Sequence record: OZ240615.1
Strand: one strand, 5' to 3'
DNA: 64,000 nucleotides
Positions 45,110 to 64,000 of the stretch are shown here, piece by piece. The notes below the pieces were generated by a model. That model made no database searches, was not told where the DNA came from, and saw only the letters and a program-made list of their open reading frames with translations. Every line of letters begins with the position of its first letter. The stretch's first letter is position 1. The position numbers and the translations under genes were made by a program.

Positions 45110-45133
45110 GGGAGAGGGAATTACCCCTCTCCC
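45110..45133 (-). terminator. Hairpin, probable terminator
   Basis: gggagaggg-aattac-ccctctccc. Confidence 0.7.
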
Positions 45134-47210: not shown

Positions 47211-47225
47211 TTTAAAATGCCCCTG

Positions 47226-49265
47226 TTAAGCGGTATAAATAAACTGGTACGGCGTCAATACTTGCGTGGCCGGTTTCGATCCAATATCCGTGTCGAACAA
47301 TGCGATCTTCCCTACCGAATTCGGTGTAAAGGAAAACGCGCTGTTGTCAGTTTTACAGCTCCAGTATTGCGCTGCTGCGCTATTAAGGGAGTTTGCCCCT
47401 ACGCAGTAGTGCGAAAGGTTACCGAGTGTGTTCGTTACAGAAGTAGACTGGCACGCGATGTTAAGAGAGAACGTCCCTTCTCCGGAGTCATTGACATGAT
47501 TACCGTCACAGGCGGTGTACGTCGAATTAATACGGAGGATCGTTCCGTAAGAAGCCAAACGCGATGCTGAGGACGTATGATTTCCATCAAAGCCGCAGTA
47601 GCTGACAGTAGCACGATTCTCAATAACCCAGTACTTAACATTCATGGACGGGAGTACACGGTCGGTAGAATAACGGAAACCACCGGCGAAACCAAACTGA
47701 GCGATGCAATTCTGATGCGCGACGTTATAACCATAACTCCCGAAAGACGGGTCTTTAAATGTCCACCCAAAGGTACACTGCGACATGTAAAGATAACCGT
47801 ATGCGCGAGGGACGGTCATGTCCGCAATGAAACCGTTGTAGGAGAGATCGAAGTTACATTTCTCCATAAACACATTGGCACTATCAGCGACCGAACCCGA
47901 CAGAGTTTTAGCAATCAGGTAAACATTCGTATCCGGCTTACGATTATCCGAGAGATGGACATAAACTCGACCGTTGGTATTGTCAACGTAGAAAGAGTGC
48001 GGAGTATTCGCGCAATCCACCGCGGATGTTTTTGCTAATAGTCTCCCGTACCCGGTAACCGAAGAAACTGTTTTATCTACCAACGTGGCAATGTCAGTCG
48101 CTGACGTATACCAGGTATTCGCATCGTAACCCGACCAGTTAGTGGTTTGGCGACTGGAGGTAAAGACAGGATTGCTGTCTCCGTAGCCTACGATATCCAC
48201 TGTCCGGTTACGGATTGTTTGCGTCCAACCTGAATCGGCGTCGTAGTAGGCATCGCTATAACCCTTAACACGAATCACGCGGGCGGCGGGTAACGCATTG
48301 AGCGCACGTTTAAATGTTTTAAACGCTGTCGCTGCGGTTGTACCGTCGTTAGTATCCACGCCGGTTTTGATATCGACATAATAGACAGTGCCTGTCGCGG
48401 CGCGTTTGGTTGTAACATCAAAAGTGAGGTTGTAGCTCAAAACACCCGCATTCAGTGCCGCAGTAATTCCTAAAGTTTCCGGGATCGCAGAAAGCTGGGA
48501 TGGCACTACTGGCATTTTGGGCAATAGCGCGCCGGTATTATCGTAAGACGTTTCCCCATTTAATCCCAGTATCTCCACTAAACGGTTATTCCGAAAACGC
48601 GCTAAGAGTTTATTTGTCGTGCTTTTATAACTGTTACTCGGAATGACTTTACCGGTCGGTGACAAATACAACGCAGTGATGCCGTTTCGTTGTGCAAGGC
48701 TTCTGGAGACATCGACTACATTACGACCGTTAATTGTCCAGTGACCGCCCATGTAATTGATAGTGCTGTAATCCGCCGCTACCATAAATTGCAACGCATT
48801 AAAGTAACTATATACCGCGTCCTGGGTACCCAGATAGATAGTTACGCTACCTGTATAAACCAGATGGTTATCGGCAACGCTAAGTGTAATTTTCCGTACA
48901 CCAGGGGCCACGTCATCAGGGCGATAAGGACCGTCAACAATGTCAGTACTGGTCAACGCCAGTTCATATTTTTGGTTGATGTAAGGAATAAGGTCAACGA
49001 GACGTGAAAGTGCGAGGTCTTCCAATTGGCAATAGGGTCGCGCTAAAAGCTTCTTGAAGCTCAGGCGATTATATTGTACAGCAACCCCTAAGGATTGCAA
49101 AGAAGAACCGTTGGAGAGTGTTATGGAAGTATTCAGTCCATTAATCACGGTTGTGTTAGTAGCGGGCGTCCCTAACGAGATTGTGGAGATCGTATAGTTC
49201 GTACCGTTCGCTTCATTAATCAGATCGATCGCGATCTGTTTTGGGGTCTGTTTCAGATCAACCAT
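47226..49265 (-). CDS. Virion fibre/tailspike-like protein, tandem paralog of 45141..47210
   Basis: LIDLIN..N-type N-terminus, YNRL, VYTGS; YYVDIKTGVDTNDG..AFKTF. Confidence 0.75.
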   Translation of the reverse strand: MVDLKQTPKQIAIDLINEANGTNYTISTISLGTPATNTTVINGLNTSITLSNGSSLQSLGVAVQYNRLSFKKLLARPYCQLEDLALSRLVDLIPYINQKYELALTSTDIVDGPYRPDDVAPGVRKITLSVADNHLVYTGSVTIYLGTQDAVYSYFNALQFMVAADYSTINYMGGHWTINGRNVVDVSRSLAQRNGITALYLSPTGKVIPSNSYKSTTNKLLARFRNNRLVEILGLNGETSYDNTGALLPKMPVVPSQLSAIPETLGITAALNAGVLSYNLTFDVTTKRAATGTVYYVDIKTGVDTNDGTTAATAFKTFKRALNALPAARVIRVKGYSDAYYDADSGWTQTIRNRTVDIVGYGDSNPVFTSSRQTTNWSGYDANTWYTSATDIATLVDKTVSSVTGYGRLLAKTSAVDCANTPHSFYVDNTNGRVYVHLSDNRKPDTNVYLIAKTLSGSVADSANVFMEKCNFDLSYNGFIADMTVPRAYGYLYMSQCTFGWTFKDPSFGSYGYNVAHQNCIAQFGFAGGFRYSTDRVLPSMNVKYWVIENRATVSYCGFDGNHTSSASRLASYGTILRINSTYTACDGNHVNDSGEGTFSLNIACQSTSVTNTLGNLSHYCVGANSLNSAAAQYWSCKTDNSAFSFTPNSVGKIALFDTDIGSKPATQVLTPYQFIYTA

Positions 49266-50459: not shown

Positions 50460-50470
50460 AGCAAGATACA

Positions 50471-50502
50471 GATTGGTGAGGGGTTAATTCCCCTCACCAA
50501 TC
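50471..50502. terminator. Bidirectional terminator between convergent genes
   Basis: gattggtgagggg-ttaatt-cccctcaccaatc. Confidence 0.8.
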
Positions 50503-50813
50503 TACTCTATGTTTGTATTTAAAACGTCTTGCTCGGAATAGAACTTATCTTCTACTACGCTGTCAAACGCCATAGAACGCATCAGAAGCGATTCAACTGG
50601 TCTATGGTAATAAACCTTATTATCCCAGGGAGGAAGCAAATCAGAGAGCAATAAGGCAGCTTCCGTGACCAACGGTAAATTGTCATCTGGGACAAAAGAA
50701 AGTGCTTCGTCCAATGCTTCGAGCAAAACATGACGAGGGGTAAACATTGCGTAATCATCCTTATTAAAAAGAATAAGGTGAGGACCGAAGTCCCCACGCT
50801 CATTTGTCTTCAC
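50502..50813 (-). CDS. Hypothetical protein after an early promoter
   Basis: 103 aa, GTG start. Confidence 0.7.
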   Translation of the reverse strand: MKTNERGDFGPHLILFNKDDYAMFTPRHVLLEALDEALSFVPDDNLPLVTEAALLLSDLLPPWDNKVYYHRPVESLLMRSMAFDSVVEDKFYSEQDVLNTNIE

Positions 50814-50922: not shown

Positions 50923-52701
50923 TTAGAGAGGGGTCAGTTCTTCTAATCTAACTTCTATTGAACGAGTCGTTGCTGTCGGAGCGGTCCCGAACTCAATGTT
51001 AAAAGACGTAACCGATTTACCTGCTAGTAATGGTCGAACCGTGGTCTGATAATCCGGTAGAATAGAAACTATTCTGTAGTTAGTATTCAAAACGGTTGAA
51101 GGTAGATTAAGCGAAAAAATAGTAGTTGTTCCATCACCCGTGATAGTATATGTCCGCGTGATTTCAGTTACATAGCCTATATTACCTGTAACCGAAAGGT
51201 TTGTTTTAGTGGCTCCGCCATAATTTATTTTCCCATCGCCAGTGGAATCGGAGAAATGATTGTTTTTAATCATCGAATCGGCAATGGTTCCGCTGGCGCC
51301 AATCGAGATATCATAACCGCTATTATTTAAAAAGGTGTTGTTTAAAATATCGATTTGATAACAAGAGGAAAGGTTAGTTTGAATATCGATCCCTTTCCCT
51401 GTACTTGTTTTAGTTGTTCCGGTTTCGTTATCTAAGTAATCTGCTTTAAAAGAACCTATAATAAAACAGTTTATGATTTTTAAACCTACAAAACCGGAGC
51501 AATAAATTCCTGATCCGCAGTTGTCAATGATAACATTATTGAATTCACAATAAGTTAGAGAACCCAATGAACCGATTCCGGATCGTTTACAATTTTTAGA
51601 TGTAAAATTAGTTATGGAGCATTTTACAATATTATTTTCACCTAAATACGCGCCGTCCTGACAGTTATCTGCGGTACCACCATCCAATTTAGCGTTATAA
51701 CATCCGTTGAAATCAACACCGTTATCGACACAGTTTTTAACGTACGGATTACTAACCAGATGGTCCTGGCACTTACCATTGGCGATTCCAATGAAACCGG
51801 CCGTATTGACAGTATCTGAGATAGATTTACATCCCACGGTTCGACCTAAAGAATCAGCTCGAAACTTAATACCGTTAGAATCAACGTTCTCAATAATGTT
51901 TTCTGAAGAAATGTGTTCGATACAATTCGTAACGTATTGTCCGCAAGATGTTTCAACAGCACCACCCTTGATTTGATGGATATAATTTCTTCTGCAGAAT
52001 GTGCGGGTTGTATTCTCAAAGTATGCGCCGTTAGCAACAAAATTAACGATTTCAATATCTTCCAAAACCGCCCCAGTAACTCCAACAGCGCTAAACGCGT
52101 AATGTTTACTTGACGAAGTTAAGTCGCCAGTAATCTTTCCCTTTTTATTCACGGATTTAAGAACGGAATAATTGGAGGCAATGAACATATGACCCGTGCT
52201 GTTTACTTTTTTAGTTACAGTGACCCCAGGTAAGACTACTAATGTAATATTTTCTGGTATAACAAAACTATCAACAATGGCATCAATATCAATCTCGACA
52301 GTATTATTAATTTTTGATGCCTTGGAACAAAGAACAGATAAAAGACTGGTAATGTCGGTATTCGGTGAGGCGTAATCTGAAACTTTTGGAGATAATTTGT
52401 TAATGGAGGAAAGAACTTTTGATTGATTTAACGCCGGATTAATATTGAAACTCCCAGTGGAAGTAACCAGATTAGCGCTCCCGTCTGGGTTGAAGCTAAT
52501 GGAACTAAAAATACCACTGGCGGTTCCTTTGTCCCATATTGTTTCTGTATTGGGATGAAAAAGAATTTTACTTTGATTAATACTGTTACCTAATTCTAGA
52601 TATTCGACCTCCGCTTCTGTCACACCATAAATTCTTGCTAAAGTATTTTTGTTTGTTATCACAGCGGCACTGCCACCTGGTTGTACTAAACGATCTAACA
52701 T
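50923..52701 (-). CDS. Tailspike with CBA120-TSP-like N-terminal docking domain and right-handed beta-helix
   Basis: QPGGSAAVITNKNTLARIYGV..EV resembles CBA120 TSP1/3 GSTG..TNKQAVARHFGV..EV; repeated parallel beta-helix rungs (NC.DNGVD, NC.DGAY). Confidence 0.8.
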   Translation of the reverse strand: MLDRLVQPGGSAAVITNKNTLARIYGVTEAEVEYLELGNSINQSKILFHPNTETIWDKGTASGIFSSISFNPDGSANLVTSTGSFNINPALNQSKVLSSINKLSPKVSDYASPNTDITSLLSVLCSKASKINNTVEIDIDAIVDSFVIPENITLVVLPGVTVTKKVNSTGHMFIASNYSVLKSVNKKGKITGDLTSSSKHYAFSAVGVTGAVLEDIEIVNFVANGAYFENTTRTFCRRNYIHQIKGGAVETSCGQYVTNCIEHISSENIIENVDSNGIKFRADSLGRTVGCKSISDTVNTAGFIGIANGKCQDHLVSNPYVKNCVDNGVDFNGCYNAKLDGGTADNCQDGAYLGENNIVKCSITNFTSKNCKRSGIGSLGSLTYCEFNNVIIDNCGSGIYCSGFVGLKIINCFIIGSFKADYLDNETGTTKTSTGKGIDIQTNLSSCYQIDILNNTFLNNSGYDISIGASGTIADSMIKNNHFSDSTGDGKINYGGATKTNLSVTGNIGYVTEITRTYTITGDGTTTIFSLNLPSTVLNTNYRIVSILPDYQTTVRPLLAGKSVTSFNIEFGTAPTATTRSIEVRLEELTPL

Positions 52702-52721
52702 GTGAATACCTCAAAAAAAGT

Positions 52722-52743
52722 AAGGAGAGGTTCCCCTCTCCTT
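52722..52743 (-). terminator. Hairpin, probable terminator
   Basis: aaggagagg-ttcc-cctctcctt plus T-tract. Confidence 0.7.
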
Positions 52744-52752
52744 GATTGTATT

Positions 52753-55700
52753 TTAAGAATGACCTAACGCGTCCATTAAAGATTGCAGTTGTTGACGTTG
52801 TTTCTCCATCTCACGTCTGACATAAGCTGCTTCTAAAGCTAGACACTCTTCCATGCGAACCATCCAAATATCCCCTGCCTCGCGAGCCTCTTGAACGACT
52901 GAACCAGCCTCGTCAAGAATCTCTTCTTGGTCGTCCCAACTGTCATAAATCAGAATTCCGTATTTCGTTGCATCAAGCCCAGCTAACTCGAATGCCTCTT
53001 TGATATCTTGAGCAACAATACCAAAATGGACACGGGCTTCGTCTGCGCCCTTTGCTTCGATCGCGGATTTCAATTTCCATTGACTAAAGCCGATTGTACC
53101 CCAGACGTCAAGAACTTCATCAGGGATAGTTTCGATGAAGTCTTTAAGGCGTCGGTCAGAAACAACGGTGACTGCGTTTTGAGAATAAATGTTATTCGCT
53201 GTTTTGTCTACTGCGCCAACGTTAAAAGTGGACGTGTTACTAAAGGTAATATTTCCGCCAAAGACGTTGTTTGCGGCATTGTACCCAATAGACGTACCAT
53301 AAGCGTTTATTGTAGCCGTACTAGAGGTTCCACCGTTAACAAAAAACTCCAACGTTCTAGTGTTAACAGTTGTTGCACCGTACCCAAACCGAATCCGCGT
53401 TCCGTTTAACGATATCTCACCATCGACTGTAAGTTTTCCTGTTTTATAGTCTTGGTAATATGTCCGACTTGAGAGTGTTGTCTGACTAATGGAGAGAGTA
53501 TCTCCTACTGAACCAACTACAGCGTCAAGGATATATTGTCCGCTAAGTGTACCAGTTGCATTCACGATACGCTTATGAATCCGTGTTTCGCCTGTGTAGC
53601 TAGTCGACGAACCACTGACGATATTCAGCGGTATTCCCATGAAAACATAAGGTTTATATTCTGCGGGTACTTCAATAGTTGTCCGGCTATTCGTATTGTC
53701 GACAGACACTATATTTACAGAGAAATTCTTCGCGAAGTACGACCCGATAGTGTTTCCGCCTTTTACAAGTAACGGGAGATTATTGTACCCATAATCCTCG
53801 TAAAAAGTCGTACCGAACTTATAATCCGGGTTAGCACGTTGATGAGCAATCCACGGATTAATCAGATCCCCTGGCGCGAAGATTCCGCCGCCAACCTTCT
53901 TAAACAGATTATATTTAAAACCGTTTGTAGGTTGCACATTCCCCCAGATACAGCGATCAGAACTTTCAGGGATGTAGCTCAGGCCGGTAGGGAATACTGG
54001 AATACCACCGGTGAATGCTTGAACAGACTTCAGGACTATAGGGGTACTGTCAGGGATAGTGAACTGTAATGACTGCTGACTACCCGAAGTGCCTACACCA
54101 TCGTTGTTATTCCATTTCAGATTTTGAATAATCGCCATTTTGTAGCCATTACCAAAATCTATTGCCATCTCTGCTTTGGCGATAAAAAGGTTGTAATTAT
54201 AACCACTGTCTGTAGTTAACTGATCAATATTTGCCGTTTGCCACAGCACAACATTGTCCAAGTCAAAACTTCCGGTAAGGTCTTTGTACCAAATGCAAAT
54301 GTTGCTGTGAATCGCAGGTGACAAAACAGGTAACTGTAGAATGCCATTCGCAGCCAGCAACCCATACGGAGAGAACATTTCCTTGGTGGTTTTTTGCCCG
54401 CGAAGCGAATCAACGTCAGGTGGGTTCGGGTAAGTAGTGTTCGTGGCGTACATGACGCCATATGTTCCGTATTTGAAATCAAACCCGCCATGAGGAAATG
54501 CCCCTACATCAGGAGTTGGACTACCTAAACGCACGAAATCGATACCGTTGGTTGACGGGTAAGAGCCGTATCCAGCGGGAGGAACCCAGTTTTCGTTTTC
54601 GTCGTAGTATCCAAACGCACCCGCCTCGAAGGTCAAATACTTATACGTCCTGTCCGGGCGATACTGCGAACCAATACAGTCGATATTTAATCCGAAACCT
54701 TTCTCGTTGCCATCGTTCCACCACTTGTTCAGGATAGTGACGTAGGAAGGTGTATCTTCCATATAGCACGCGGAGTAGACAGAGCCACGCGCAGCGGTAG
54801 CGATAACAGACTTATTCGGTTTACGCTCGGTAGGATTGTACGCAGGGATACTGAGATACGTACCTGAGCAATGGAAGCCATGACCTGTTTCGATTAAAAA
54901 GTAGTCACACTGCTGGCCGCTGACTGAACTTGCCCATCTACCGTTGTTCGAAATAGTCCCGCCAATCCACTGGCACCAGTCAATATGCAGTCGCACGCAG
55001 CAATAACGTGCTGTACTGATATACATATTTTTGAATGTACAGCCGTAGAAGTTGCCAATTTTCTCAGGGAGGACGCTAGATTTGTACGGAATGATATCGC
55101 TAGACATCACACCATCTTCATCAATGCGAACCTGCATCCCGACGAGGTTAACTCTAAAGTTCTCTATCCGAATATCTTCGAACGAACAATACCATGGGTT
55201 GAGAGCCAAAACACCTACGCCGGCAGTGCAATCCGTATCAAGCGTTCCGGGAACATGATCACCAATGATCTTCCCGCCGGTCATCTTGATGAATCCAAGA
55301 CTTACTGACTCCCAGTAGAGTTTGTTTCCTAGCGCCGTATAGACCTGCTCGACATCTTCTACAGAGTGCTCGAAGCCGTTAAGGTATTCACCAGTCACCT
55401 GGAATTTTCGAGACGCGCTGGCTTTTACGTAAATCGTAGATGCACCAAGATTATAAATGACGTTCGAACGCAGCTTCGCAGCCTCTTTCCCGATACGCCA
55501 TAAACCAGAGGTAATATTGAACGTAATAACACTGTAGGTACTTTGTCCGTTAATATTGTTATTTGTTTGCATCCATAAAGGTAGCGTATTAATGATCCCA
55601 TTAATAGCCTGGCCTAAGCATACAAAATCGTCTGTGTCCAATTGGGCTTCTGTATAATCATCAACTTCTTTCGCGCCATTAGCCCTAGGATCAATTACAA

Positions 55701-56694
55701 ACGAGCTATCTTCAAGTTGTATTTGGTACTCAACACCGTTGGCGTTATAGACTTTACCCTCGGTGATAACATGAGTACCCGCTTTTGCTGTATCGATATT
55801 ACCTGTTTTTTTCCACGAGCCCGCGCCCCCGTCATCCTCTACGTAGAACCCTCTCGTTTTAAATCTTTCAACTTCACTCTTCTGGGTTAAAATATCTAAT
55901 GTACAAGCAAGCCATTCACCTAAACCTTCACGTAATGTCTGCCCGGTGCCAAGAAGAATAAGGTCCGTACCTTCACCGTTAGAGGCGCTAGAAAGTTTAT
56001 CTGCATTTATTTTCTTTTCCAGTTCACTTTGAACTGTTCCGCCGCCCAGCACCCCGATATTACTCGCTCCATTAGGGGCGCCATATGTCGCTAAGAACGC
56101 TTCGTTAACCTTCTCTACGTCGTCGCTACCAAAGCAGATCGCTACTACGGTTTGATTTTCTTTTACTGGTGTAGCGAGTTTAAAACTCAACGCATTGCCG
56201 GCAACTAATTCAAATCCGACGTCTTTGAATTGACGCAAGCCATCAACGTAAACTTCCTGGACTGAGATATCCCCAGTCAGCGGAACAGTAAAGGTTTGCT
56301 CACCGCCATTACTCAGCCCACCGTTATAAACCCACTGAACAATCGCTCCCTTATCTTTCAAAGCTTTGTTCAATAAAGCGTAGGTCCCGTAGGTAATTTG
56401 TTCGCCTTCGCTATTAAGCAAAGGAGTGGCGCCCGATCCGGCATTCACCCACCCTTGTACGTGTTCTTTCGTAGCGTCGGTATAAACGAAAAAGGTATCG
56501 CCGTTGACTGTGTTAGCGACGCCGCTGGCAGTATCGCTATAGGCATTTTCAAACAGGATACTTTCACGCAATTTTTTGAGCGTGACTTTATAAGTATCAT
56601 TCTCTTCTTTGACTTGTGCGATGGGAATAAACCCATTCTCAGAGGCTACCGACAACGCCGGTAATTCGGTAATTTTTAAACTAGACTTATCCAT
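52753..56694 (-). CDS. Large tailspike/fibre with XD-like docking domain and C-terminal S74 intramolecular chaperone
   Basis: VSDRRLKD..RVHFGIVAQDI..YG (peptidase S74); WVYNGGLSNGGEQTF..VYVDGLRQ (XD-like); 1313 aa. Confidence 0.85.
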   Translation of the reverse strand: MDKSSLKITELPALSVASENGFIPIAQVKEENDTYKVTLKKLRESILFENAYSDTASGVANTVNGDTFFVYTDATKEHVQGWVNAGSGATPLLNSEGEQITYGTYALLNKALKDKGAIVQWVYNGGLSNGGEQTFTVPLTGDISVQEVYVDGLRQFKDVGFELVAGNALSFKLATPVKENQTVVAICFGSDDVEKVNEAFLATYGAPNGASNIGVLGGGTVQSELEKKINADKLSSASNGEGTDLILLGTGQTLREGLGEWLACTLDILTQKSEVERFKTRGFYVEDDGGAGSWKKTGNIDTAKAGTHVITEGKVYNANGVEYQIQLEDSSFVIDPRANGAKEVDDYTEAQLDTDDFVCLGQAINGIINTLPLWMQTNNNINGQSTYSVITFNITSGLWRIGKEAAKLRSNVIYNLGASTIYVKASASRKFQVTGEYLNGFEHSVEDVEQVYTALGNKLYWESVSLGFIKMTGGKIIGDHVPGTLDTDCTAGVGVLALNPWYCSFEDIRIENFRVNLVGMQVRIDEDGVMSSDIIPYKSSVLPEKIGNFYGCTFKNMYISTARYCCVRLHIDWCQWIGGTISNNGRWASSVSGQQCDYFLIETGHGFHCSGTYLSIPAYNPTERKPNKSVIATAARGSVYSACYMEDTPSYVTILNKWWNDGNEKGFGLNIDCIGSQYRPDRTYKYLTFEAGAFGYYDENENWVPPAGYGSYPSTNGIDFVRLGSPTPDVGAFPHGGFDFKYGTYGVMYATNTTYPNPPDVDSLRGQKTTKEMFSPYGLLAANGILQLPVLSPAIHSNICIWYKDLTGSFDLDNVVLWQTANIDQLTTDSGYNYNLFIAKAEMAIDFGNGYKMAIIQNLKWNNNDGVGTSGSQQSLQFTIPDSTPIVLKSVQAFTGGIPVFPTGLSYIPESSDRCIWGNVQPTNGFKYNLFKKVGGGIFAPGDLINPWIAHQRANPDYKFGTTFYEDYGYNNLPLLVKGGNTIGSYFAKNFSVNIVSVDNTNSRTTIEVPAEYKPYVFMGIPLNIVSGSSTSYTGETRIHKRIVNATGTLSGQYILDAVVGSVGDTLSISQTTLSSRTYYQDYKTGKLTVDGEISLNGTRIRFGYGATTVNTRTLEFFVNGGTSSTATINAYGTSIGYNAANNVFGGNITFSNTSTFNVGAVDKTANNIYSQNAVTVVSDRRLKDFIETIPDEVLDVWGTIGFSQWKLKSAIEAKGADEARVHFGIVAQDIKEAFELAGLDATKYGILIYDSWDDQEEILDEAGSVVQEAREAGDIWMVRMEECLALEAAYVRREMEKQRQQLQSLMDALGHS

Positions 56695-56740
56695 TTCGGT
56701 ACCTGTATAGTCTGGGTAAATAAGAGGGTATCTAGATCGT

Positions 56741-56744
56741 CATA
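56741..56744 (-). promoter_or_regulatory. Putative late promoter (TTATGACG)
   Basis: TATG immediately after a terminator, about 47 nt upstream of the fibre gene. Confidence 0.45.
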
Positions 56745-56752
56745 AAAACACA

Positions 56753-56783
56753 ATAGAGAGAGGGCTTTACGCCCTCTCTCTAT
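56753..56783 (-). terminator. Intrinsic terminator
   Basis: atagagagagggc-tttac-gccctctctctat. Confidence 0.85.
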
Positions 56784-56796
56784 GCAAAGGAGTTAA

Positions 56797-56946
56797 TTAT
56801 GACCCTTCTTCAAGAACGGTCTCTTCTGGGGTTTCCTTCCAACCTACGTTTAAGAATGCCTCAACGTATTCTTCAGGTATACTAATGTAATCTACTGAAT
56901 ACCCATCGATCTCTTCAGCAGTTCCCTTAATAAATAACTTTTTCAT
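56797..56946 (-). CDS. 49-aa acidic protein coupled to a tailspike gene (MKKLFIKGTAEEIDGYSVDYISIPEEYVEAFLNVGWKETPEETVLEEGS)
   Basis: Missing from the ORF track; starts 1 nt after the tailspike stop; V...L..GW..TP motif recalls a phage small-protein family. Confidence 0.75.
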   Translation of the reverse strand: MKKLFIKGTAEEIDGYSVDYISIPEEYVEAFLNVGWKETPEETVLEEGS

Positions 56947-56947
56947 T

Positions 56948-58744
56948 TTAACTCCAAATTAACGTAATAACTGCATTGCCGTAATCACTCTTAACGAATA
57001 AATATTTAGTCCCTGCCGTATTATTAGTGAAGTTATAAGACAAAGATCCATAGGCCGCGGAAGCGATGATGTGCCCATTAGTCGACCCACCGTTGGAAAT
57101 TTCAACCCCCGATGTTCTTGTTGCTACATTAACTGTCGTCAGATTAGTTTGTGCGGTGTCAGAAAAGAGTTGCATTTCGACTATTCCCGCACTAGAATCG
57201 ATAACAGCGGTGTTGTTCGGTTTGAAGAAAGACAGAGAAACGCTAATTGCACTCCCTGTTGTTGCAGTGAGGCTGGCAGTAAAACCTAAGTACCCAGCCG
57301 GTCTAAAAATAGACCGCGGATGGTTTAAACCGGTAATCACTACGTCAGGTTTTCTACCAAAATAGTAATTATCGACAACCATAATGCCGCCATTATCGCC
57401 ACCAGATGTATAACCACCGATAAAAGCTCGGATGTCACCACCGGTACTGGAGGTCAGGAAATAGTTTTTCGAAACGATTATCCCTTGAGGGTTGAGGAGT
57501 CCATTTTTACCTTCTATTCTTAATGCCTGGCCATTAGGTGAAGAGAATGTATTTCCTTCAATAACCGACGTGTATACACCCATTAGGTTCATACCGTTAC
57601 GGTAATTACCATCAACAAGGTTGTTGGTAATGTTCATTCCACTTGCTGCCGTACCTCGACCGTAAGCAAGAATGCCTATACGCTTATTATTTCTACAGTC
57701 GTTACCTGTGATTAAAGGACCTGTACCATTACCCGATGCGAATAAACCGTCGACACCGTTATAATTGGACTTGTTGTTTATAAACACAACCTGAGAAGAT
57801 CCTTCAAACATGTCAATGCCGTTATTACTGTTATAGCAACAAATATTATTTCTAATTTCCCCGGCATCGGCATAGCCAAAACCTAATCCGATATAACCAT
57901 TACCACTCGCTTCAGCATTTGAAACATTAACAATTCCTGCCGAATGGGATTTCGAGTAACAAAACAACCCGGACCATCCATTATTATTGAATTTGTTTCT
58001 CCCTATAAATTCAATAGACCAAGCTTCTTCGGCGTTCCCGATTACGAAACCGTTATTACCGTTCTGATCTTTAGTAAAATATTGACCGGCATCGTACGTA
58101 CCCGTACCACCGTCTTGTAATGTTGGTTTAGTTCCGTCATTTACTAAAGTAATGGCGTTACCAGAAATCGATAGTATTTTAAATTTAGAGTCACCAATCC
58201 AAATAAGATCATTAGCTGCAAATCCCGTTGAATCAGTAACGCTGACAACGTAGTCTGTTGAAGTATCAATAGCGTTGACGCAAGTTGTTCTTTGTAACTT
58301 TCCGTTATTGGAAAATTCACAGTTTTCTAATATAACCTTTGCCTGTCCTACAAAATTCTTTCGCCAAACACGTCCACCGTACCGATAAAACCCATTCGCT
58401 GAGAAATTGCGTATTTTACACACACCGGTGCTTTGATTGATGTAAAATTGACAACCGGCATTAACGCTCCCAGTGGTGGGTATAATATTAATTCCGTCGA
58501 CATCCGCACAGTTAAAGGTTATAAAACGACTAACTGGGTAGACCCCACCGTTTCCTCGTAATTGTAAGTTGTTATCCGTAGCAAAGGCGTCTGCTGCAAT
58601 GAGGGCGTCTGACCAATCTGAATCTGAAGTTATTTTACTTTCGAACATTTCAGGAGTGACGTAACGTATTGCACTATCAATATCTGCGCCGTTCCTTAAT
58701 AAGGAAGCTGTACTACCCTGCGGCCTGTTAAAATCGGTCAACAT
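56948..58744 (-). CDS. Tailspike, right-handed beta-helix
   Basis: RPQGST N-terminus, YVTPEMF, Asn/Gly-rich rungs (NN..NG..G). Confidence 0.85.
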   Translation of the reverse strand: MLTDFNRPQGSTASLLRNGADIDSAIRYVTPEMFESKITSDSDWSDALIAADAFATDNNLQLRGNGGVYPVSRFITFNCADVDGINIIPTTGSVNAGCQFYINQSTGVCKIRNFSANGFYRYGGRVWRKNFVGQAKVILENCEFSNNGKLQRTTCVNAIDTSTDYVVSVTDSTGFAANDLIWIGDSKFKILSISGNAITLVNDGTKPTLQDGGTGTYDAGQYFTKDQNGNNGFVIGNAEEAWSIEFIGRNKFNNNGWSGLFCYSKSHSAGIVNVSNAEASGNGYIGLGFGYADAGEIRNNICCYNSNNGIDMFEGSSQVVFINNKSNYNGVDGLFASGNGTGPLITGNDCRNNKRIGILAYGRGTAASGMNITNNLVDGNYRNGMNLMGVYTSVIEGNTFSSPNGQALRIEGKNGLLNPQGIIVSKNYFLTSSTGGDIRAFIGGYTSGGDNGGIMVVDNYYFGRKPDVVITGLNHPRSIFRPAGYLGFTASLTATTGSAISVSLSFFKPNNTAVIDSSAGIVEMQLFSDTAQTNLTTVNVATRTSGVEISNGGSTNGHIIASAAYGSLSYNFTNNTAGTKYLFVKSDYGNAVITLIWS

Positions 58745-58774
58745 TATTAATACCTCAAAAAGAAAAGTTTAGTT

Positions 58775-58778
58775 CATA
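58775..58778 (-). promoter_or_regulatory. Putative late promoter (CTATGAAC)
   Basis: TATG after a terminator, about 31 nt upstream of the tailspike gene. Confidence 0.45.
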
Positions 58779-58782
58779 GAAA

Positions 58783-58812
58783 AATTGAGAGATGGGGGCC
58801 CATCTCTCAATT
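58783..58812 (-). terminator. Intrinsic terminator
   Basis: aattgagagatggg-gg-cccatctctcaatt. Confidence 0.8.
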
Positions 58813-59010
58813 TTATATTATCTCAGTTTTAAGCAGGGGCAGCGATCAGCGTTTTTCATTCCATGTCGAGGTTTGTGCTCTCCTGACCATTAGCTGGGTT
58901 CTTCGTGAACCTTTACTTTTCTCGCTACAAACGATATCCTTTAATCTTTCTTCATTACCAAACAACACTAAAAGAAAAAAAGAGAAAAGATATCAGCTTT
59001 TAACCATGGG

Positions 59011-60813
59011 TCATTTAACCTTAACGTTACCAGAACTATCTTTATAAATCCCACCAACGTCAGAAGGCACAGTTGTCGATATACCAGAGAATGTCAGCGT
59101 GTTTTGTGCGACTACAGTGGCTGCACTAATTGACTTACTGCCATTCACTACGACATTTAACCCGCACTGAATGCCGTTATATTGGGTAGAGTTTATTTCT
59201 AGTAAATCGGTACTAGGGACAGTCCCGGTAATAATGGTACCCATACCACTAGTACCATCTATACCTAAATCCCCTTGTAACCTCATGAAACCTCTTCCGG
59301 TAGAATTAATGAAGTTAACAAATTTCACACCGTAAATATAAGCATCAACTCGATAGGTTTTTACCTGGGTCGTACTGTCGCCGATTTCGAATGCGTGGAC
59401 CTGCGTTGCAGTAGTCCCATTTATTGGCGCCCCGACATACCCTTGGAATGTGTTTGCATCATTAAGGAAAACTACCGCCGCTCCGGGCTCCCAGTTTGAG
59501 TAAACTCGAGTATTGGTAACGGAGTTCCTTGCGCCTACGAAACAAATCTGTGCACCGGCGGCGCCTTCGAAATGACAGTTTGTAATTAAACTATCGTAAG
59601 AAGCTAAGTAAAGACCATACCGTACTCGGTTTTTGTAATAGGTCGTTAATTGCGAATCGCCGCTTTGCCATACGTGGAACTGATCTCCACGAGTACCGCC
59701 GCCACCGCCAAAACGAATACCGTCATAGGTTTTATGGGCTTTTAGGCCGGCGTTCCTGACAACGAACTTATCGGAATGGTTGTCAGAAGACCCGCCAATC
59801 ACAATACCGTCCTCACCCACCATATCTACACGAATGTCGCTATAAAGTGAAGGTGCGCCGTAACGAATAGTTGTGGTACTTTTACCGCCGGCCTTTAGTC
59901 CGATCCCACTACAGTACCCCGCCCTTATCCCTTTCAATTTCGTCCCAGTACCCCAAACCTTCAAAGCGCATTCATGAACGTTTGTGGTATCATCCGGTCC
60001 TCCCCAACCGCCTTCGATAATGATGTTCTCGATCGTTACTGATTGAACTTCCGCTGATGCGTTAGTTATCGATAAATAATCACCGGTAGGCGCATCTTTA
60101 GTTTTGACTACGGCATCGCTCCAACCGTTAAGTGCAACAATTTTAGTGAGATTTTCTACGCCGAAAATTCTAGCGCGAGAAGGAATGATAAAGACGGACG
60201 AAATCGCGTATGTACCCGTTAACTTTAAAGGCAGGTTAAGGGAGACAGAATAGTCTGCTGCCATCTGAAGCGCTAAAATATCGTCAGTGACTCCGTCTCC
60301 TTTTGCACCGAAGAACTCCGGCGTAACGTAAAGATCAACTACCCTTTCCCACCAGAAGTCGCTACCTGCAACAATAATTTTTTTATTATCATCAGGAGGG
60401 GTCCCAATTTTACCTATAAAGTCACCACCGCCGGTATTCAGGTCGGCGTAATAACCTTTAACGCGAACCGTTTGTCCGTTGTACAGAGGTTTAAACTTTC
60501 TGAGGTCAGCAATCGTCGCAATAGAAACGATTGTCAACGCTGCAGGTAACGCCACACCCTGAAATATTCCTTTATCAGTCGTTATCGTCGCCACGGTGCC
60601 GCTGATATTGATTCCTGAAACAACACCCGTGACAGCACTGACGCTGAAGATTTCTTTTGATGCTGGATCAACAGCGAAAGAAAAATTGGTTAAGTCTACA
60701 TTTTTATCGAGTGCGGTAATAGTACTCAATGGAATGTTTAATAACTGAGAGAACACTTCTGCGCATGACTGTATGGACGTACTTCCACTTGGCTGAATAA
60801 AATTAGTTTGCAT
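59011..60813 (-). CDS. Tailspike (pectate-lyase-3-like beta-helix depolymerase)
   Basis: QPSGST N-terminus; IATIADLR..VRVKGYY..GGGDF; VTPEFFGAKGDGVTDD..ALQ.A. Confidence 0.88.
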   Translation of the reverse strand: MQTNFIQPSGSTSIQSCAEVFSQLLNIPLSTITALDKNVDLTNFSFAVDPASKEIFSVSAVTGVVSGINISGTVATITTDKGIFQGVALPAALTIVSIATIADLRKFKPLYNGQTVRVKGYYADLNTGGGDFIGKIGTPPDDNKKIIVAGSDFWWERVVDLYVTPEFFGAKGDGVTDDILALQMAADYSVSLNLPLKLTGTYAISSVFIIPSRARIFGVENLTKIVALNGWSDAVVKTKDAPTGDYLSITNASAEVQSVTIENIIIEGGWGGPDDTTNVHECALKVWGTGTKLKGIRAGYCSGIGLKAGGKSTTTIRYGAPSLYSDIRVDMVGEDGIVIGGSSDNHSDKFVVRNAGLKAHKTYDGIRFGGGGGTRGDQFHVWQSGDSQLTTYYKNRVRYGLYLASYDSLITNCHFEGAAGAQICFVGARNSVTNTRVYSNWEPGAAVVFLNDANTFQGYVGAPINGTTATQVHAFEIGDSTTQVKTYRVDAYIYGVKFVNFINSTGRGFMRLQGDLGIDGTSGMGTIITGTVPSTDLLEINSTQYNGIQCGLNVVVNGSKSISAATVVAQNTLTFSGISTTVPSDVGGIYKDSSGNVKVK

Positions 60814-60830
60814 TTATTTTTTCCTTTAAC

Positions 60831-60859
60831 AAAGGCTAAGAGAATTAATCTTAGCCTTT
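60831..60859 (-). terminator. Hairpin, possible terminator
   Basis: aaaggctaaga-gaattaa-tcttagccttt. Confidence 0.65.
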
Positions 60860-60868
60860 TATTTTAGA

Positions 60869-63415
60869 TCAATCTATCGCCTCAATTTCAATGGAGAAGT
60901 TATATTGGTTTAAAGTAACCGCCCCGGAAGTACCTTTAATGTTGAGATCGAAACCTTGGTTGGAAGTTGTAGAATAAGTATTATCAGCTAAGGAATCGAC
61001 ATTAGAAACATTAATTGGTTCAAAGACTTTGTTTTTTACAGTTACGGTAGATGTGGCTGAATCGAAAGTTACAGCAGGTAATGAATCGGTCCTGGTAGTG
61101 ACGCCGGCGTTATTGGCGTTGGGCAGGTTAATTATAAACTCTTGCTGCGCAGTACTTGAAATATCTGAGCGTAAGGTAACTTTGTATCTATGCCATGGCA
61201 ATAAAGATCGTACTCTAACTACGTTATCTACGCCTTTATAAATTACACCGGTTAATTTACATCTAAGACCTTTGGTCCTCACTATCGATTCACCAACTCT
61301 GGTGGGATGGGACGTCCCATTACCCGCAGCCGCCTCGGCTAACGCCAACCACGGACGAATAGTCAAAGAGGTAGTTGTATTGTCGAGTGGGATCGATGCG
61401 GTAAATTTATAATTTATACAATCTAAGTTAACCCAACCGCTGTTGCCTAATTTTTTAACGAGTCTTGTGCTTTGAGTTGAGGAACTCACGGAATTTCCAT
61501 TAAACCCATCGTAACGGAAAAGCGCTTTTCCGTCTATATTAGCATTGTTGCTAACGAGAATCGCAGTACTATTCCCGCCCTGCTCAAACCAACCGCCCAT
61601 GTCAATATAGCAATTGTATAAACTATCGGCGCGAGTACCGTCGCCAACGTAAATCGCAGTTGACGTGTCGGTGATACCGTGCTGAAAGTAAAAATTAGAG
61701 ATATTGGCGCCGTAAAAAGAGAGAGTTTGCCAATCTGTAGATGTTGGGTTTGAATGGAACCAAATTCCTTTTGACGACGTCCGGAGAACAACGTTGTCTA
61801 TAATAGCAACCTCTGTCCATCCTAAATCGTTGTAGTAGTCAATACAAGTACCAGTTGTATAATCTCGTATAACGGAATCTTTTACTGTTCCGCCGTAAAA
61901 ATCCGAAAAACGTACAAAGGCTATAGCGTTTGCATTTCCTACCACAGTGAAATTCTTTAAAGTGACTTTGTTAAGGAGAGATTGCGCTTGAGACTGTCTT
62001 TTGAATGTTATCCCTATATTACTACCGGTGTGAGTTATCACCGGCGATATTCCTTTAGTGGCCATACCCGGCCCTTCGATAATAATCTCATTTGAGGAGT
62101 TTATGAAAGTTAGCCCGCCATTTAATGTATAACCTAGCGGACCTAGTGATGGGATAACAACCCTTTTCTTTGCCGTTTTAATACAAAAGTTAATAGCGTT
62201 CGTTAAAGGCGTATCTATTACCCCGCCATCAACTAGGCCAAAAGAAACCAAATCAACGGTGTCGGAAATATTCACTCTTTCCCAATAGAACCCACTCCCA
62301 GCAGCGACGGTTCCGCCATCGTCAGTTCCTGTCCCTATATGCCCAATGAATTGACCCCCACCCGAAGTACTCCCACTGTAATACCCCTTCAGGTTTACTT
62401 TCTCGCCTTCAAAATTAGGTCTTCTGTTTCTGAGATCATCGAAGGAGTTTACGCCGTAAAACCCCTGAACTACTTGCTCCAGGCTCACGCCGTAAGAAGT
62501 GTTCACTTTGGTAGCGCCAGTTGTTTGGCCTAGCGTTAAGAGAACCTCAGCCGGTGTCCCTGATACCTGTGCGGTAATAATTGAGCGAGATCCGCCAAGA
62601 ATCACTTCAACGACGTCGTTCGCATTCAGCGCTTTCGAAAGATTAATTTTCAGGCCGGTGCTATCGACTTCGTAGTGTTTATTCAGAACTTGTTTTGAGC
62701 CGTTGATGTAAATGGCAGGAACCGTACTGAACGTCCACGGCGGGGTAAGCGATGTTTCTCCGCCAACAGCTGCACCGTCGTTGTACAACCACGTGACATT
62801 AACGTAGTCAGTAATCCCTGGTTCCACAGGCGTCACAGGAGTACCTGGGTACGGTCTGACGTAGAAGACAACGAAAGCCCCGGCGGTTAATGCGCCTTTT
62901 AATTTTACTTTGTTCGATAACCGATCGAACGTATAGTTCAACCCCTTGAACTGATGTCCACCATTCAAGAACATCTCTGAGACATCAAAGCAGTCGAACG
63001 GTAACGTGATCTCTGTCTCACCGCCGTTAGCAGAACCGTTGTTATACAGGTAGCTAACGTATGACGTATAGGAGCCAAATTTACCATCAGCCATCATTTT
63101 CCCGGTGCCGTAGATAACCGGTGTATTGTCTTTATAAAGGGCTGTGGCAGAGGCACCGTTGACGTTAGTAAACGCAGCGACGTAGAACTGACTCTCGTCG
63201 GTATAGACGTAGAAGACTTCATCTTTGACAGTGGCCGCAATGCCTTCTGCGAGGGTTTCGTAAGCGTTTTCAAAGAGAAGGTTAGATCGAAGATTATTTA
63301 GGGTGGTACGGTACGTTTCCTTTTCAGCTCCTGCTACTGCCACTGGCAATAGAGCGGATTCTGGAACAATACCCTTACTCGAAAGTTCGGAAATTTTTCT
63401 TGTGTCATTGGCCAT
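60869..63415 (-). CDS. Tailspike hub with two XD-like docking domains (start reassigned to MANDTRK)
   Basis: Two repeats, YLYNNGSANGGETEITL..MFLNG.HQ and WLYNDGAAVGGETSL..IYINGSKQ; then a beta-helix body; GAGGT RBS. Confidence 0.85.
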   Translation of the reverse strand: MANDTRKISELSSKGIVPESALLPVAVAGAEKETYRTTLNNLRSNLLFENAYETLAEGIAATVKDEVFYVYTDESQFYVAAFTNVNGASATALYKDNTPVIYGTGKMMADGKFGSYTSYVSYLYNNGSANGGETEITLPFDCFDVSEMFLNGGHQFKGLNYTFDRLSNKVKLKGALTAGAFVVFYVRPYPGTPVTPVEPGITDYVNVTWLYNDGAAVGGETSLTPPWTFSTVPAIYINGSKQVLNKHYEVDSTGLKINLSKALNANDVVEVILGGSRSIITAQVSGTPAEVLLTLGQTTGATKVNTSYGVSLEQVVQGFYGVNSFDDLRNRRPNFEGEKVNLKGYYSGSTSGGGQFIGHIGTGTDDGGTVAAGSGFYWERVNISDTVDLVSFGLVDGGVIDTPLTNAINFCIKTAKKRVVIPSLGPLGYTLNGGLTFINSSNEIIIEGPGMATKGISPVITHTGSNIGITFKRQSQAQSLLNKVTLKNFTVVGNANAIAFVRFSDFYGGTVKDSVIRDYTTGTCIDYYNDLGWTEVAIIDNVVLRTSSKGIWFHSNPTSTDWQTLSFYGANISNFYFQHGITDTSTAIYVGDGTRADSLYNCYIDMGGWFEQGGNSTAILVSNNANIDGKALFRYDGFNGNSVSSSTQSTRLVKKLGNSGWVNLDCINYKFTASIPLDNTTTSLTIRPWLALAEAAAGNGTSHPTRVGESIVRTKGLRCKLTGVIYKGVDNVVRVRSLLPWHRYKVTLRSDISSTAQQEFIINLPNANNAGVTTRTDSLPAVTFDSATSTVTVKNKVFEPINVSNVDSLADNTYSTTSNQGFDLNIKGTSGAVTLNQYNFSIEIEAID

Positions 63416-63470: not shown

Positions 63471-63500
63471 ATAGAGAGGGGCCGAAAAGCCCCTCTCTAT
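63471..63500 (-). terminator. Intrinsic terminator
   Basis: atagagaggggc-cgaaaa-gcccctctctat. Confidence 0.85.
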
Positions 63501-63609: not shown

Positions 63610-64000
63610 CTATTGAACGAATGTCTTTACTGGACCGAGATAAATTGAACCAGTAGTTTGATAGTGCCGCAGTCCTACATGTACAGTTGCTGCACCAGGG
63701 GGGACCATAACATTACCTGAGCACTTAACTGGATTGGCCGATGACCCGGTTGTACCAGAGAGGTTAGTTCCGATAACGTTATGTGAGATCTCTACGCCAT
63801 CAATGTCATAAAACGTATAACCGAAATAAATACCACCGTTTGTAGCTGATAAATTGGTCCAGTAAAGCGTAGTCGCCAGGTAAAGAGTTTGTCCGGCGGA
63901 ACAGCGTATTTTCTGCCCGAATAGTGTGGTCAAACCACCCGTTGCGTAAGTACCCGTGATTTTCGCGGCCGGCCCGATAGGACTACTGGCATCGTAGGTG
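63610..64000 (-). CDS. C-terminal part of a probable tail fibre (CBM/jelly-roll-like end), truncated by window edge
   Basis: Frame open to the window end (..TYDASSPIGPAAKITG..); YFGYTFYDIDG..G..VPPGAATVHV resembles carbohydrate-binding module ends. Confidence 0.7.
   Translation of the reverse strand, partial: TYDASSPIGPAAKITGTYATGGLTTLFGQKIRCSAGQTLYLATTLYWTNLSATNGGIYFGYTFYDIDGVEISHNVIGTNLSGTTGSSANPVKCSGNVMVPPGAATVHVGLRHYQTTGSIYLGPVKTFVQ

Follow-up and report, generated by a model that had tools for sequence, protein, structure and literature searches.

Hub and satellite tail spikes of a Klebsiella jumbo phage as probable parts of a branched docking network

Introduction

Docking of one phage spike onto another, through an N-terminus that engages an XD domain, has been demonstrated experimentally. 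In phage CBA120, TSP1 and TSP3 dock on XD3 (PMC11414711), and XD2 of TSP4 pairs with XD2 of TSP2, a contact between hubs rather than with a satellite (PMC11414711). Experiments likewise place gp63.1 of G7C on gp66 (PMC6872550), the gp38 peptide of KP32 on gp37 (PMC13352976), and gp48 of Shigella phage B2 on gp49 (PMC11654681; PDB 9D84). XD1 of both T4 gp10 and CBA120 TSP4 binds no partner (PMC10253068), and the presence of an XD alone thus does not imply a docking site.

The branched design for capsule recognition is not new, as it was published in 2022 for phiKp24 (PMC9700779), a close relative of the phage examined here. Ouyang et al. (2022, PMC9700779) presented a hyperbranched tail-fibre model for phiKp24 (vB_KpM_FBKp24, Maaswegvirus) and showed branched fibres by cryo-ET. 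Of the phage's 14 RBPs, 11 are active depolymerases (PMC13385381). Here we describe a related spike cluster and compare its modules with those of the systems above.

Results

The stretch of DNA analysed (the window, 64,000 nucleotides) is the final 64 kb of OZ240615.1 (299,730 bp), Klebsiella phage vB_KpM_Centimanus (100% match), a relative of phiKp24. The window carries the tail-spike gene cluster of a Klebsiella jumbo phage, with the following features.

45141..47210, minus strand: second DUF7941 fibre (CENTIMANUS_00359), 98% identical to its phiKp24 counterpart
47226..49265, minus strand: DUF7941 fibre (CENTIMANUS_00360), conserved, with a Pfam DUF7941 N-terminus (E 3e-19)
50923..52701, minus strand: satellite C (CENTIMANUS_00365, 592 aa); leader MLDRLVQPGGS, TD1-like head (residues 1-90), beta-helix
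52753..56694, minus strand: hub 2 (CENTIMANUS_00366, 1313 aa); putative anchor, one XD, large receptor-binding body, S74 chaperone
about 52756-53160, minus strand: C-terminal S74 intramolecular chaperone of hub 2 (Peptidase_S74, E 4.6e-12)
56110-56349, minus strand: XD of hub 2, XD3-like, matching B2 gp49 116-194 (E 4e-9)
56356-56694, minus strand: putative anchor of hub 2, homologous to that of hub 1
56797..56946, minus strand: small acidic ORF (CENTIMANUS_00367, 49 aa) between satellite B and hub 2
56948..58744, minus strand: satellite B (CENTIMANUS_00368, 598 aa); beta-helix (Beta_helix, E 2e-11) immediately behind the leader MLTDFNRPQGS
59011..60813, minus strand: satellite A (CENTIMANUS_00369, 600 aa); leader MQTNFIQPSGS, TD1-like head of ~90 aa, neck module, pectate-lyase-like beta-helix
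60869..63415, minus strand: hub 1 (CENTIMANUS_00370, 848 aa); putative anchor, XDa, XDb, neck module, beta-helix depolymerase
62573..62821, minus strand: XDb of hub 1 (residues 199-281), XD2-like by HMM and fold match
62831..63079, minus strand: XDa of hub 1 (residues 113-195), XD3-like by HMM and fold matches
63080..63415, minus strand: putative anchor of hub 1 (residues 1-112), 32% identical to that of hub 2
63610..64000, minus strand: end of another fibre gene (C-terminal 129 aa), its frame open to the last base and cut by the record end

The fibre cluster extends beyond the window and the end of the record, with at least five further fibres, two of which are cut by the assembly; three fibres at the start of OZ240615.1 each bear the anchor. 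An estimated 3 kb is absent from the assembly between the end and the start of the record, an apparent assembly gap that could conceal a further XD or leader. At the position matching 63610..64000, phiKp24 and LPKP23 encode anchor-only fibres, and phiKp24 has unrelated small ORFs at the position of CENTIMANUS_00367 and after hub 1.

Hub 1 corresponds to gp306 (RefSeq gp107) of phiKp24, with 70% identity over residues 1-609, and hub 2 to gp301 (RefSeq gp112), with 90% identity confined to residues 1-234. The longest ORF of hub 1 begins at 63460; the start at 63415 taken by the earlier note is preferred because GAGG lies 9 nt upstream of it and the paralogues agree. The full-length model of hub 1 resembles the beta-helix tailspike depolymerases Depo32, DpK2 and CBA120 TSP2 and TSP4 (Foldseek E ~1e-9), and many metagenomic relatives share its N-terminal region (315 aa) at 95-97% identity. 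A BLASTP alignment of hub 1 with hub 2, which takes in the anchor, is 32% identical across 164 aa (E 4e-25) and yields the shared consensus read previously, KI.EL .. TY..TL..LR...LFENAY .. F.VYTD. Seven copies of this anchor occur in the Centimanus genome, both hubs included, and it is absent from all three satellites. The earlier count of two anchored hubs therefore understates a system in which seven proteins carry the module.

The anchor profile has no relative in PDB, Pfam or Atlas and does not match the N-terminal structure of CBA120 TSP4; the AF2 model of the hub 1 anchor is unreliable (pLDDT <50). Its assignment as a virion anchor consequently follows from position and conservation only, and on these grounds we suggest that this module of ~112 aa attaches its protein to the virion.

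HMMs built from the hub repeats themselves place two XD repeats in the hub 1 product (residues 113-195 and 199-281; E 3e-43 and 1e-40) and a single one in the hub 2 product (residues 116-195; E 2e-36), as the earlier note had read. Searched at the protein level, the full 299,730 bp of the record yield three XDs, confined to the hub 1 and hub 2 genes. Their sequences match Shigella phage B2 gp49 (E 1.5e-26), CBA120 TSP2 (E 2e-16) and residues 1-335 of TSP4 (E 1e-11), and their fold matches 7REJ (Foldseek E 5e-9). The XDa model (pLDDT 70-90) superimposes on the gp48-bound XD of B2 gp49 (residues 123-191; 9D84) with a VIA Z of 13.1, an rmsd of 0.9 Å and 36% identity, and on XD3 of CBA120 TSP4 (residues 261-335) with a VIA Z of 12.0 and 42-44% identity. 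XDb aligns best with XD2 of TSP4 (residues 187-250; VIA Z 9.4, rmsd 1.3 Å). No XD2-like domain was found in hub 2, whose sole XD is XD3-like. The XDs are strongly conserved. Sequence and model comparisons together identify the hub repeats as T4 gp10-like XD domains and as true homologues of the CBA120, G7C and B2 docking domains.

The satellites share an 11-aa leader with the consensus M-x-x-x-[LF]-x-[QR]-P-x-G-S, present as first noticed at the three spikes beginning at 50923 (MLDRLVQPGGS), 56948 (MLTDFNRPQGS) and 59011 (MQTNFIQPSGS). Among 230 M-starts in the window with at least 100 aa downstream, three have [QRK]PxGS within the first 15 aa, and these are exactly the three satellites. Written as a degenerate DNA pattern and run over all 299,730 bp, the leader matches exactly the three satellite starts (~0.3 expected by chance; no matches in a reversed-sequence control).

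Satellite A is homologous to satellite C over its N-terminal 89 aa (hhalign probability 94%, E 1e-7), and residues 1-88 of satellite C match G7C gp63.1 (4QNL, E 6.7e-5), CBA120 TSP3 (5W6F, E 1e-3) and B2 gp48 (9D84_A, E 1e-3). Satellite B has the leader peptide only, without the TD1-like head of satellites A and C; it shares its first ~12 aa alone with its phiKp24 counterpart, and a PDB sequence search with it gave no match. The leader of satellite A is unchanged in 7 relatives. For each satellite class, the first 8-11 residues are invariant in 7 phages and the remainder is swapped. The five receptor-binding bodies, compared among themselves, display no similarity, and unrelated Klebsiella phages carry their homologues, with 45-58% identity.

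Gene order follows the modules. The hub with two XDs precedes two satellites and the hub with one XD precedes one. Of 7 related genomes, 6 have this arrangement, and the Centimanus spike cluster is syntenic with that of phiKp24. In MJ359, two satellites follow a one-XD hub, and a strict 1:1 stoichiometry thus fails there. The earlier proposal of about three docking sites for three satellites agrees with the counts of three XDs and three leaders; the XD2-like character of XDb and the arrangement in MJ359 speak against it.

The two more fibres noted earlier at 45-49 kb have DUF7941 N-termini. They are 27% identical to each other; CENTIMANUS_00360 is 99% identical to its phiKp24 counterpart, and an HMM domain search of it found no anchor, XD or leader. 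By their N-terminal sequences, the DUF7941 fibres are assigned to an attachment class separate from the anchor and leader spikes.

Discussion

A branched spike network, in which satellites dock on XDs and bodies are swappable, is probably the best explanation of these observations. Homology, counts and synteny support it well. The homology of the modules, their number, order and conservation are shown, whereas it is inferred that satellites physically dock, which XD each of them takes and what the anchor does. On this view, a Klebsiella jumbo myophage of the phiKp24 type would encode here part of its receptor-binding apparatus, assembled from exchangeable modules. Two trimeric hub spikes would be fixed to the virion by the N-terminal anchor of ~112 aa; behind it would come T4 gp10-like XDs, a pair in hub 1 and a single one in hub 2, and last each hub's own depolymerase body. 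The satellites would be depolymerase spikes that begin with the 11-aa leader, followed in two of three by the TD1-like head of ~90 aa, and each satellite trimer would dock N-terminus first onto one XD trimer. The most likely pairing would set satellite A on XDa, the peptide-only satellite B on XDb, and satellite C on the hub 2 XD. Recombination may exchange the C-terminal bodies while the docking modules stay constant, and this stretch could thereby yield five different capsule specificities. The Ackermannviridae/G7C-style network put forward in the earlier note agrees with module homology, counts and gene order and is incomplete, as the cluster and its anchors extend further and one satellite has the leader peptide alone.

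The assignment of XDb is where a different arrangement has most to offer. Only the XD3-like domains, XDa and the hub 2 XD, might hold satellites, with XDb serving as a spacer or making a hub-hub or other contact and satellite B attaching elsewhere. XDb is indeed closest to CBA120 TSP4 XD2 (Z 9.4), which pairs with TSP2 XD2, XD1 is partnerless in T4 gp10 and TSP4 (PMC10253068), and a TD1-like head is present in satellites A and C but not in B. We nevertheless regard this arrangement as unlikely: hub 2 offers no XD2-like partner for XDb, the satellite B leader is of the same class, invariant in 7 phages and directly behind hub 1, a bare conserved peptide suffices in KP32 for docking on a T4 gp10-like domain (PMC13352976), and three XDs stand against three leaders genome-wide.

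Somewhat less probable again is the model published for phiKp24 (PMC9700779), in which hub 1 alone would sit on the baseplate, with hub 2, the anchor-only fibres and the other fibres hanging on hub 1 or its branches. Although hub 1 has the most XDs and the most conserved N-terminal region, the genome has three XDs for at least nine other fibres, and the canonical XD-binding N-terminus is limited to the three leader proteins. Moreover, besides hub 2, at least five proteins have the hub 1-type anchor, which argues for an attachment site of the hub 1 type and not for docking on the hub 1 XDs.

Finally, it is most improbable that the XDs are mere spacers, all spikes attaching independently to the baseplate and the leader acting as a baseplate-binding or assembly/chaperone signal, for although a jumbo baseplate is large and docking in the phiKp24-like group is inferred rather than directly observed, the XDs with which XDa shares 36-44% identity were solved or demonstrated in complex with such N-termini, and the conserved hub-satellite adjacency and count would be left without explanation.

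Comparison with known systems

Read as a branched network with XD-docked satellites, the Centimanus cluster shares elements with several described systems. RaK2 and phiK64-1 (Alcyoneusvirus) are likewise Klebsiella jumbo phages in which XDs and TD1/D1 heads assemble many depolymerases (PMC10253068). RaK2 differs in having one primary fibre, gp528, with five XDs and a lineage-specific anchor (PMC10253068), whereas Centimanus has few XDs and an anchor multiplied over many fibres. In KP32, compared by description (PMC13352976; Latka et al. [quoted passage not shown]

The hub 1 XDs are collinear with residues 104-281 of B2 gp49 (E 1.5e-26), XDa falls on the gp48-bound XD at 0.9 Å, and the satellite C head matches both G7C gp63.1 and B2 gp48. 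In contrast, G7C (gp66/gp63.1) and B2 (gp49/gp48) are N4-like podophages that pair one hub with one satellite, and B2 gp49, an adaptor, has no enzymatic body (PMC11654681), whereas the Centimanus hubs are predicted to be depolymerase spikes themselves.

CBA120 TSP1-4 (Plattner et al. 2019, as summarised in PMC11414711) resemble the Centimanus spikes in having XDs on two hub spikes and two satellites with TD1-type N-termini and a QPxGS leader, with XDa similar to TSP4 XD3 and XDb to XD2. Unlike in CBA120, each Centimanus hub appears to have its own anchor, so that an XD2-XD2 link between hubs would be unnecessary. Hub 1 also lacks XD1 and has its XD3-like domain before the XD2-like one, a third, peptide-only satellite is present, and Centimanus is a 300-kb jumbo phage outside the Ackermannviridae.

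phiKp24 is the nearest match. Its gp306 and gp301 have T4 gp10-like domains, its gp304, gp303 and gp300 have the three Centimanus leaders, gene order is identical, the N-terminal modules are 90-97% identical and the DUF7941 fibres 98-99%. The receptor-binding bodies of hub 2 and of all three satellites, in contrast, are replaced in Centimanus. Whereas the published phiKp24 model groups fibres by N-terminal length and places all of them on gp306, Centimanus has three N-terminus classes (anchor, leader and DUF7941) and only three XD sites.

Organization of the fibre cluster

The 12.5-kb stretch of the earlier note (50923-63415) matches Klebsiella phage vB_KpM_Centimanus (OZ240615.1, 299,730 bp) at 100% identity, and phiKp24 (vB_KpM_FBKp24) is its nearest relative among described phages. 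Centimanus is a myovirus from sewage that belongs to the Leicester-UTI1 cocktail; nine depolymerases are attributed to it (PMC13436347). It is one of the six phages of a cocktail tested against ESBL Klebsiella urinary infection in mice (PMC13436347). The cluster lies near the end of the window, which is also the end of the record (record position = window position + 235,730), and its genes are all on the minus strand. They are transcribed in the order hub 1, satellite A, satellite B, a 49-aa ORF, hub 2, satellite C, four small genes and two DUF7941-headed fibres. Hubs are spikes with an N-terminal anchor followed by one or two XD domains, the putative docking sites; satellites are spikes that open with a short leader peptide.

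Genes of the cluster and associated hairpins (window positions)
60869-63415, minus, hub 1
59011-60813, minus, satellite A
56948-58744, minus, satellite B
56797-56946, minus, 49-aa acidic ORF between satellite B and hub 2
52753-56694, minus, hub 2
50923-52701, minus, satellite C
47226-49265, minus, DUF7941-headed fibre
45141-47210, minus, DUF7941-headed fibre
63471-63500, 60831-60859, 58781-58814, 56753-56783, 52722-52743, 50468-50505 and 45110-45133, GC-rich hairpins

The start of hub 1 at 63415, as the earlier note had placed it, is preferred over 63460, where the longest ORF begins, because a GAGG precedes the ATG at 63415 by 9 nt and this start agrees with the alignment of the paralogues. 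At the positions equivalent to the 49-aa ORF, the close relative phiKp24 carries unrelated small ORFs of 64 and 97 aa. A strong GC-rich hairpin with stems of 9-16 bp follows almost every fibre gene in the window. These hairpins may be intrinsic terminators, and phiKp24 has annotated terminators at several matching places; perhaps they also mark the boundaries of cassettes for module exchange.

Both fibres that the earlier note had proposed at 45-49 kb are present and carry DUF7941 N-termini. A search for a relative of the DUF7941 fibre in the PDB found none. The two fibres (45141-49265) share 98-99% identity with the corresponding fibres of phiKp24 and adjoin spikes whose bodies have been exchanged; they resemble a conserved core component more than variable readers of the capsule.

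Two hubs carry three XD domains

Two XD repeats in the product of 60869-63415 (residues 113-195, XDa, and 199-281, XDb) and one in that of 52753-56694 (residues 116-195), proposed previously from the sequence, are recovered here with both sequence and fold matches in the PDB. All three share the core W/Y-x-Y-N-x-G-x-x-x-G-G-E. Searched against the PDB with phmmer, hub 1 matches gp49 of Shigella phage B2 collinearly across both repeats (E 1.5e-26), a 1086-aa tail fibre (9D80, E 4.6e-26), CBA120 TSP2 (E 2e-16) and residues 1-335 of CBA120 TSP4 (E 1e-11), and the hub 2 XD matches residues 116-194 of gp49 (E 4e-9).

When hub 1 residues 1-315 are modelled with AlphaFold2 (AF2), confidence is reached in the two XD repeats only (pLDDT 70-90), and the top Foldseek match of the model is TSP4 1-335 (E 5e-9). 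Compared one by one, XDa superimposes on B2 gp49 123-191 (9D84_B; VIA Z 13.1, rmsd 0.9 Å over 69 aa, 36% identity) and on the XD3 domain of TSP4, residues 261-335 (7RFO; VIA Z 12.0, 42-44% identity), and XDb on the TSP4 XD2 domain, residues 187-250 (7RFV; VIA Z 9.4, rmsd 1.3 Å); the T4 baseplate chain 5IV5_A is a weaker fold match, with a VIA Z of only 5.6. The 9D84 chain covers as much of gp49 as the C3 cryo-EM map resolves in a co-purified gp48/gp49 complex (PMC11654681).

A whole-record protein search places XDs in the hub 1 and hub 2 genes only. The domain order is anchor, XD or XDs, neck and beta-helix, which places the XDs between the presumed attachment module and the predicted enzymatic body of a trimeric spike. 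Judged from sequence, from the modelled fold (a beta-sandwich of about 70-80 aa) and from position, the hub repeats are T4 gp10-like XDs, predicted to dock partner spikes.

A shared anchor and three leader peptides

Over their first 164 aa, hub 1 and hub 2 are 32% identical (E 4e-25), and this alignment gives back the consensus of the roughly 100-aa shared hub anchor reported in the earlier note. The module, about 110 aa long, occurs in seven copies in the record, and phiKp24 carries it on seven clustered fibres.

Anchor copies in the Centimanus record
Hub 1
Hub 2
CENTIMANUS_00002 to 00004, three fibres at the record start
Record 210155-212776, 873-aa product, outside the window and far from the cluster
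Record 201320-201943, 207-aa product, outside the window and far from the cluster

The 207-aa product consists of hardly anything beyond the anchor itself. A profile built from 13 anchor sequences has no credible match in the PDB and none in Pfam, a search of the ESM Atlas returned no relative (scores all < 0.9), and in two runs of AF2 monomer modelling the anchor does not fold (pLDDT below 50). For these reasons we infer, rather than observe, its role in attachment.

The satellites begin with MQTNFIQPSGS (A), MLTDFNRPQGS (B) and MLDRLVQPGGS (C), and these leaders align with MISQFNQPRGS, the start of CBA120 TSP3. The leader motif M-x-x-x-[LF]-x-[QRK]-P-x-G-[ST], written as degenerate DNA and run across the 299,730-bp record, matches the three satellite starts only, compared with none in a reversed control and about 0.3 expected by chance. 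The (Q/R)PxGS leaders noticed earlier on the spikes at 50923, 56948 and 59011 are thus unique to them in the record. The observation as a whole, XD repeats, anchor and leaders, is real and far beyond chance.

Behind the leader, the satellites differ. In its N-terminal part (residues 1-88), satellite C matches G7C gp63.1 (4QNL, E 6.7e-5), CBA120 TSP3 (5W6F) and B2 gp48 (9D84_A; both E 1e-3). A word search supplied only three homologues of this head, which leaves its alignment thin. With hhalign, satellite A proves homologous to satellite C over the initial 89 aa (probability 94%, E 1e-7); the satellite A head has no direct PDB match, and it is through satellite C alone that it is linked to the class of about 90-aa TD1/D1 head domains. 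Satellite B lacks such a head, its leader passing at once into a beta-helix.

Conserved candidate docking parts and exchanged bodies

Fibres were classified with HMMs and the leader motif in seven related genomes (Centimanus, phiKp24, LPKP23, KpYy_2_45, KpSz_1, KpLz-2_45 and MJ359). All seven have a hub 1 with two XDs and, behind it, one satellite of class A and one of class B; six have a hub 2 with one XD and a single class-C satellite behind it. The exception is MJ359, where two class-C satellites come after a hub 2 with one XD. The MJ359 segment (PQ182779.1, 13569-20633) encodes class-C leader satellites of 601 and 803 aa.

In all seven phages, every satellite class keeps its first 8-11 residues unchanged and the XDs hardly vary, and the sequence behind the leader is replaced. 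The Centimanus cluster is syntenic with that of phiKp24 and highly identical to it in the N-terminal modules. Satellite B of the two phages has only about 12 residues in common, and hub 2 shares 90% identity with its counterpart up to residue 234 (residues 1-234) and no relationship beyond. Such a pattern is expected if docking falls to the leader and the XD, which stay fixed, and the bodies behave as cassettes that can be exchanged.

The predicted bodies fit the right-handed parallel beta-helix of capsule depolymerase tailspikes. Pfam assigns Beta_helix to satellites B and C; satellite A has a pectate-lyase-like match of 24.3 bits, just under the curated cut-off of 27. Hub 2 ends in an S74 intramolecular chaperone (Pfam) and matches PHROG tail-fibre families. 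The full-length model of hub 1, of low confidence (mean pLDDT 57.7), matches beta-helix depolymerases of Klebsiella, Acinetobacter and CBA120 (Depo32, DpK2, CBA120 TSP2/4; E ~1e-9). Pairwise, the five bodies show no mutual similarity, and their closest relatives occur in unrelated small Klebsiella phages, at 45-58% protein identity and, for hub 2, about 80% DNA identity. Five different capsule specificities, as predicted in the earlier note, are plausible for Centimanus. In phiKp24, 11 of 14 RBPs have been shown to be active as depolymerases (PMC13385381).

The hub 2 body (53271-55628) has about 77-81% DNA identity to spikes of small unrelated Klebsiella phages, among them vB_Kpn_K38PH09C2, phi1_146046 and FBKp34, a sign that a receptor-binding cassette was recently exchanged horizontally. 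The satellite B body (56948-58744) has a 45% identical relative in the Stenotrophomonas jumbo phage BUCTxx100 and 47% identical relatives in the 157-kb Klebsiella phages K751, T751 and T765.

Proposed docking of satellites on hubs

Docking between such parts is established in other phages. CBA120 TSP1 and TSP3 attach by their TD1 heads to XD3 of TSP4 and TSP2, whose XD2 domains pair with one another, and the virion anchor is on TSP4 only (PMC11414711); in G7C, the gp10-like region of gp66 is bound by the N-terminus of gp63.1 (PMC6872550). Incorporation of KP32 gp38 is abolished by deleting either its 29-aa conserved peptide or the branching domain of gp37 (PMC13352976). The XD1 domains of T4 gp10 and of TSP4 have no binding partner (PMC10253068).

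From homology, count and synteny we conclude that each satellite trimer would dock on one XD trimer. Hub 2 XD with satellite C is the safest of the predicted pairs, since an XD3-like domain would there meet a TD1 head. The XD3-like XDa most likely holds the TD1-headed satellite A; XDb, which is XD2-like and for which hub 2 offers no XD2 partner, most likely holds the peptide-only satellite B. A strict one-to-one rule is broken by MJ359: either its two class-C satellites compete for a single docking site, or the rule is not strict.

A larger set of anchor-bearing fibres and a possible bouquet

At the window end (63610-64000, minus) a fibre gene is cut by the end of the record, leaving the C-terminal 129 aa, and the record begins (1-913, plus) inside another fibre gene, with frame 2 open from base 2; the product is a paralogue of the C-terminal part of hub 2 (44% identity to residues 934-1080). 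At the same position phiKp24 and LPKP23 have complete divergent, anchor-only fibres, so that a stretch estimated at 3 kb appears to be absent from the Centimanus assembly; it seems to contain two 5' ends that encode anchors, together with a divergent promoter. A 2200-aa 'tail fiber' at the record start was considered as a docking scaffold and rejected; it carries neither XD nor anchor and is a transglycosylase/hub-like virion protein.

The network of two hubs and three satellites described in the earlier note is correct in outline, upheld by homology, count and synteny, with docking predicted; it is incomplete, as at least seven fibres carry the anchor. With at least seven anchor-bearing fibres and three XDs, the module counts are at odds with the published single-stem model, in which everything is mounted on the counterpart of gp306 (hub 1). 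A set of parallel anchored fibres that bears three side branches is the better fit. We tentatively suggest, at somewhat less than even odds, that the phiKp24-like 'hyperbranch' is mostly a bouquet: at least seven trimeric fibres attached in parallel to the virion through one anchor family of about 110 aa, with branching confined to three XD and leader pairs.

If true, attachment would be multivalent and would depart from the single stems modelled for CBA120 and RaK2 and published for phiKp24, and the question becomes how members of one anchor family are directed to baseplate sites, separate or common.

The host range of Centimanus is probably set by these spikes, and a division into docking parts (anchor, XD and 11-aa leader) and exchangeable capsule-specific bodies would explain host-range differences among its relatives.

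Comparison with known systems

The cluster is not itself an Ackermannviridae TSP gene cluster, the kind to which it had been likened. The Centimanus anchor profile finds no TSP4 N-terminus; the Ackermannviridae TSP cluster has the order XD1-XD2-XD3, whereas Centimanus has only an XD3-like domain followed by an XD2-like one; and the Ackermannviridae backbone is lacking, Centimanus being a 299.7-kb phiKp24-like jumbo phage. Cryo-ET has shown 'hyperbranched' tail fibres on phiKp24, and the model drawn for them places T4 gp10-like docking domains in gp306 and in gp301, the latter the counterpart of hub 2 (PMC9700779). The design of the cluster is essentially that published for phiKp24 and the Ackermannviridae, found here in a sister phage; since the architecture has been described before, the discovery is a modest one. 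The tally of three XDs, three leaders and at least seven anchors offers a concrete correction to test against the single-stem phiKp24 model.
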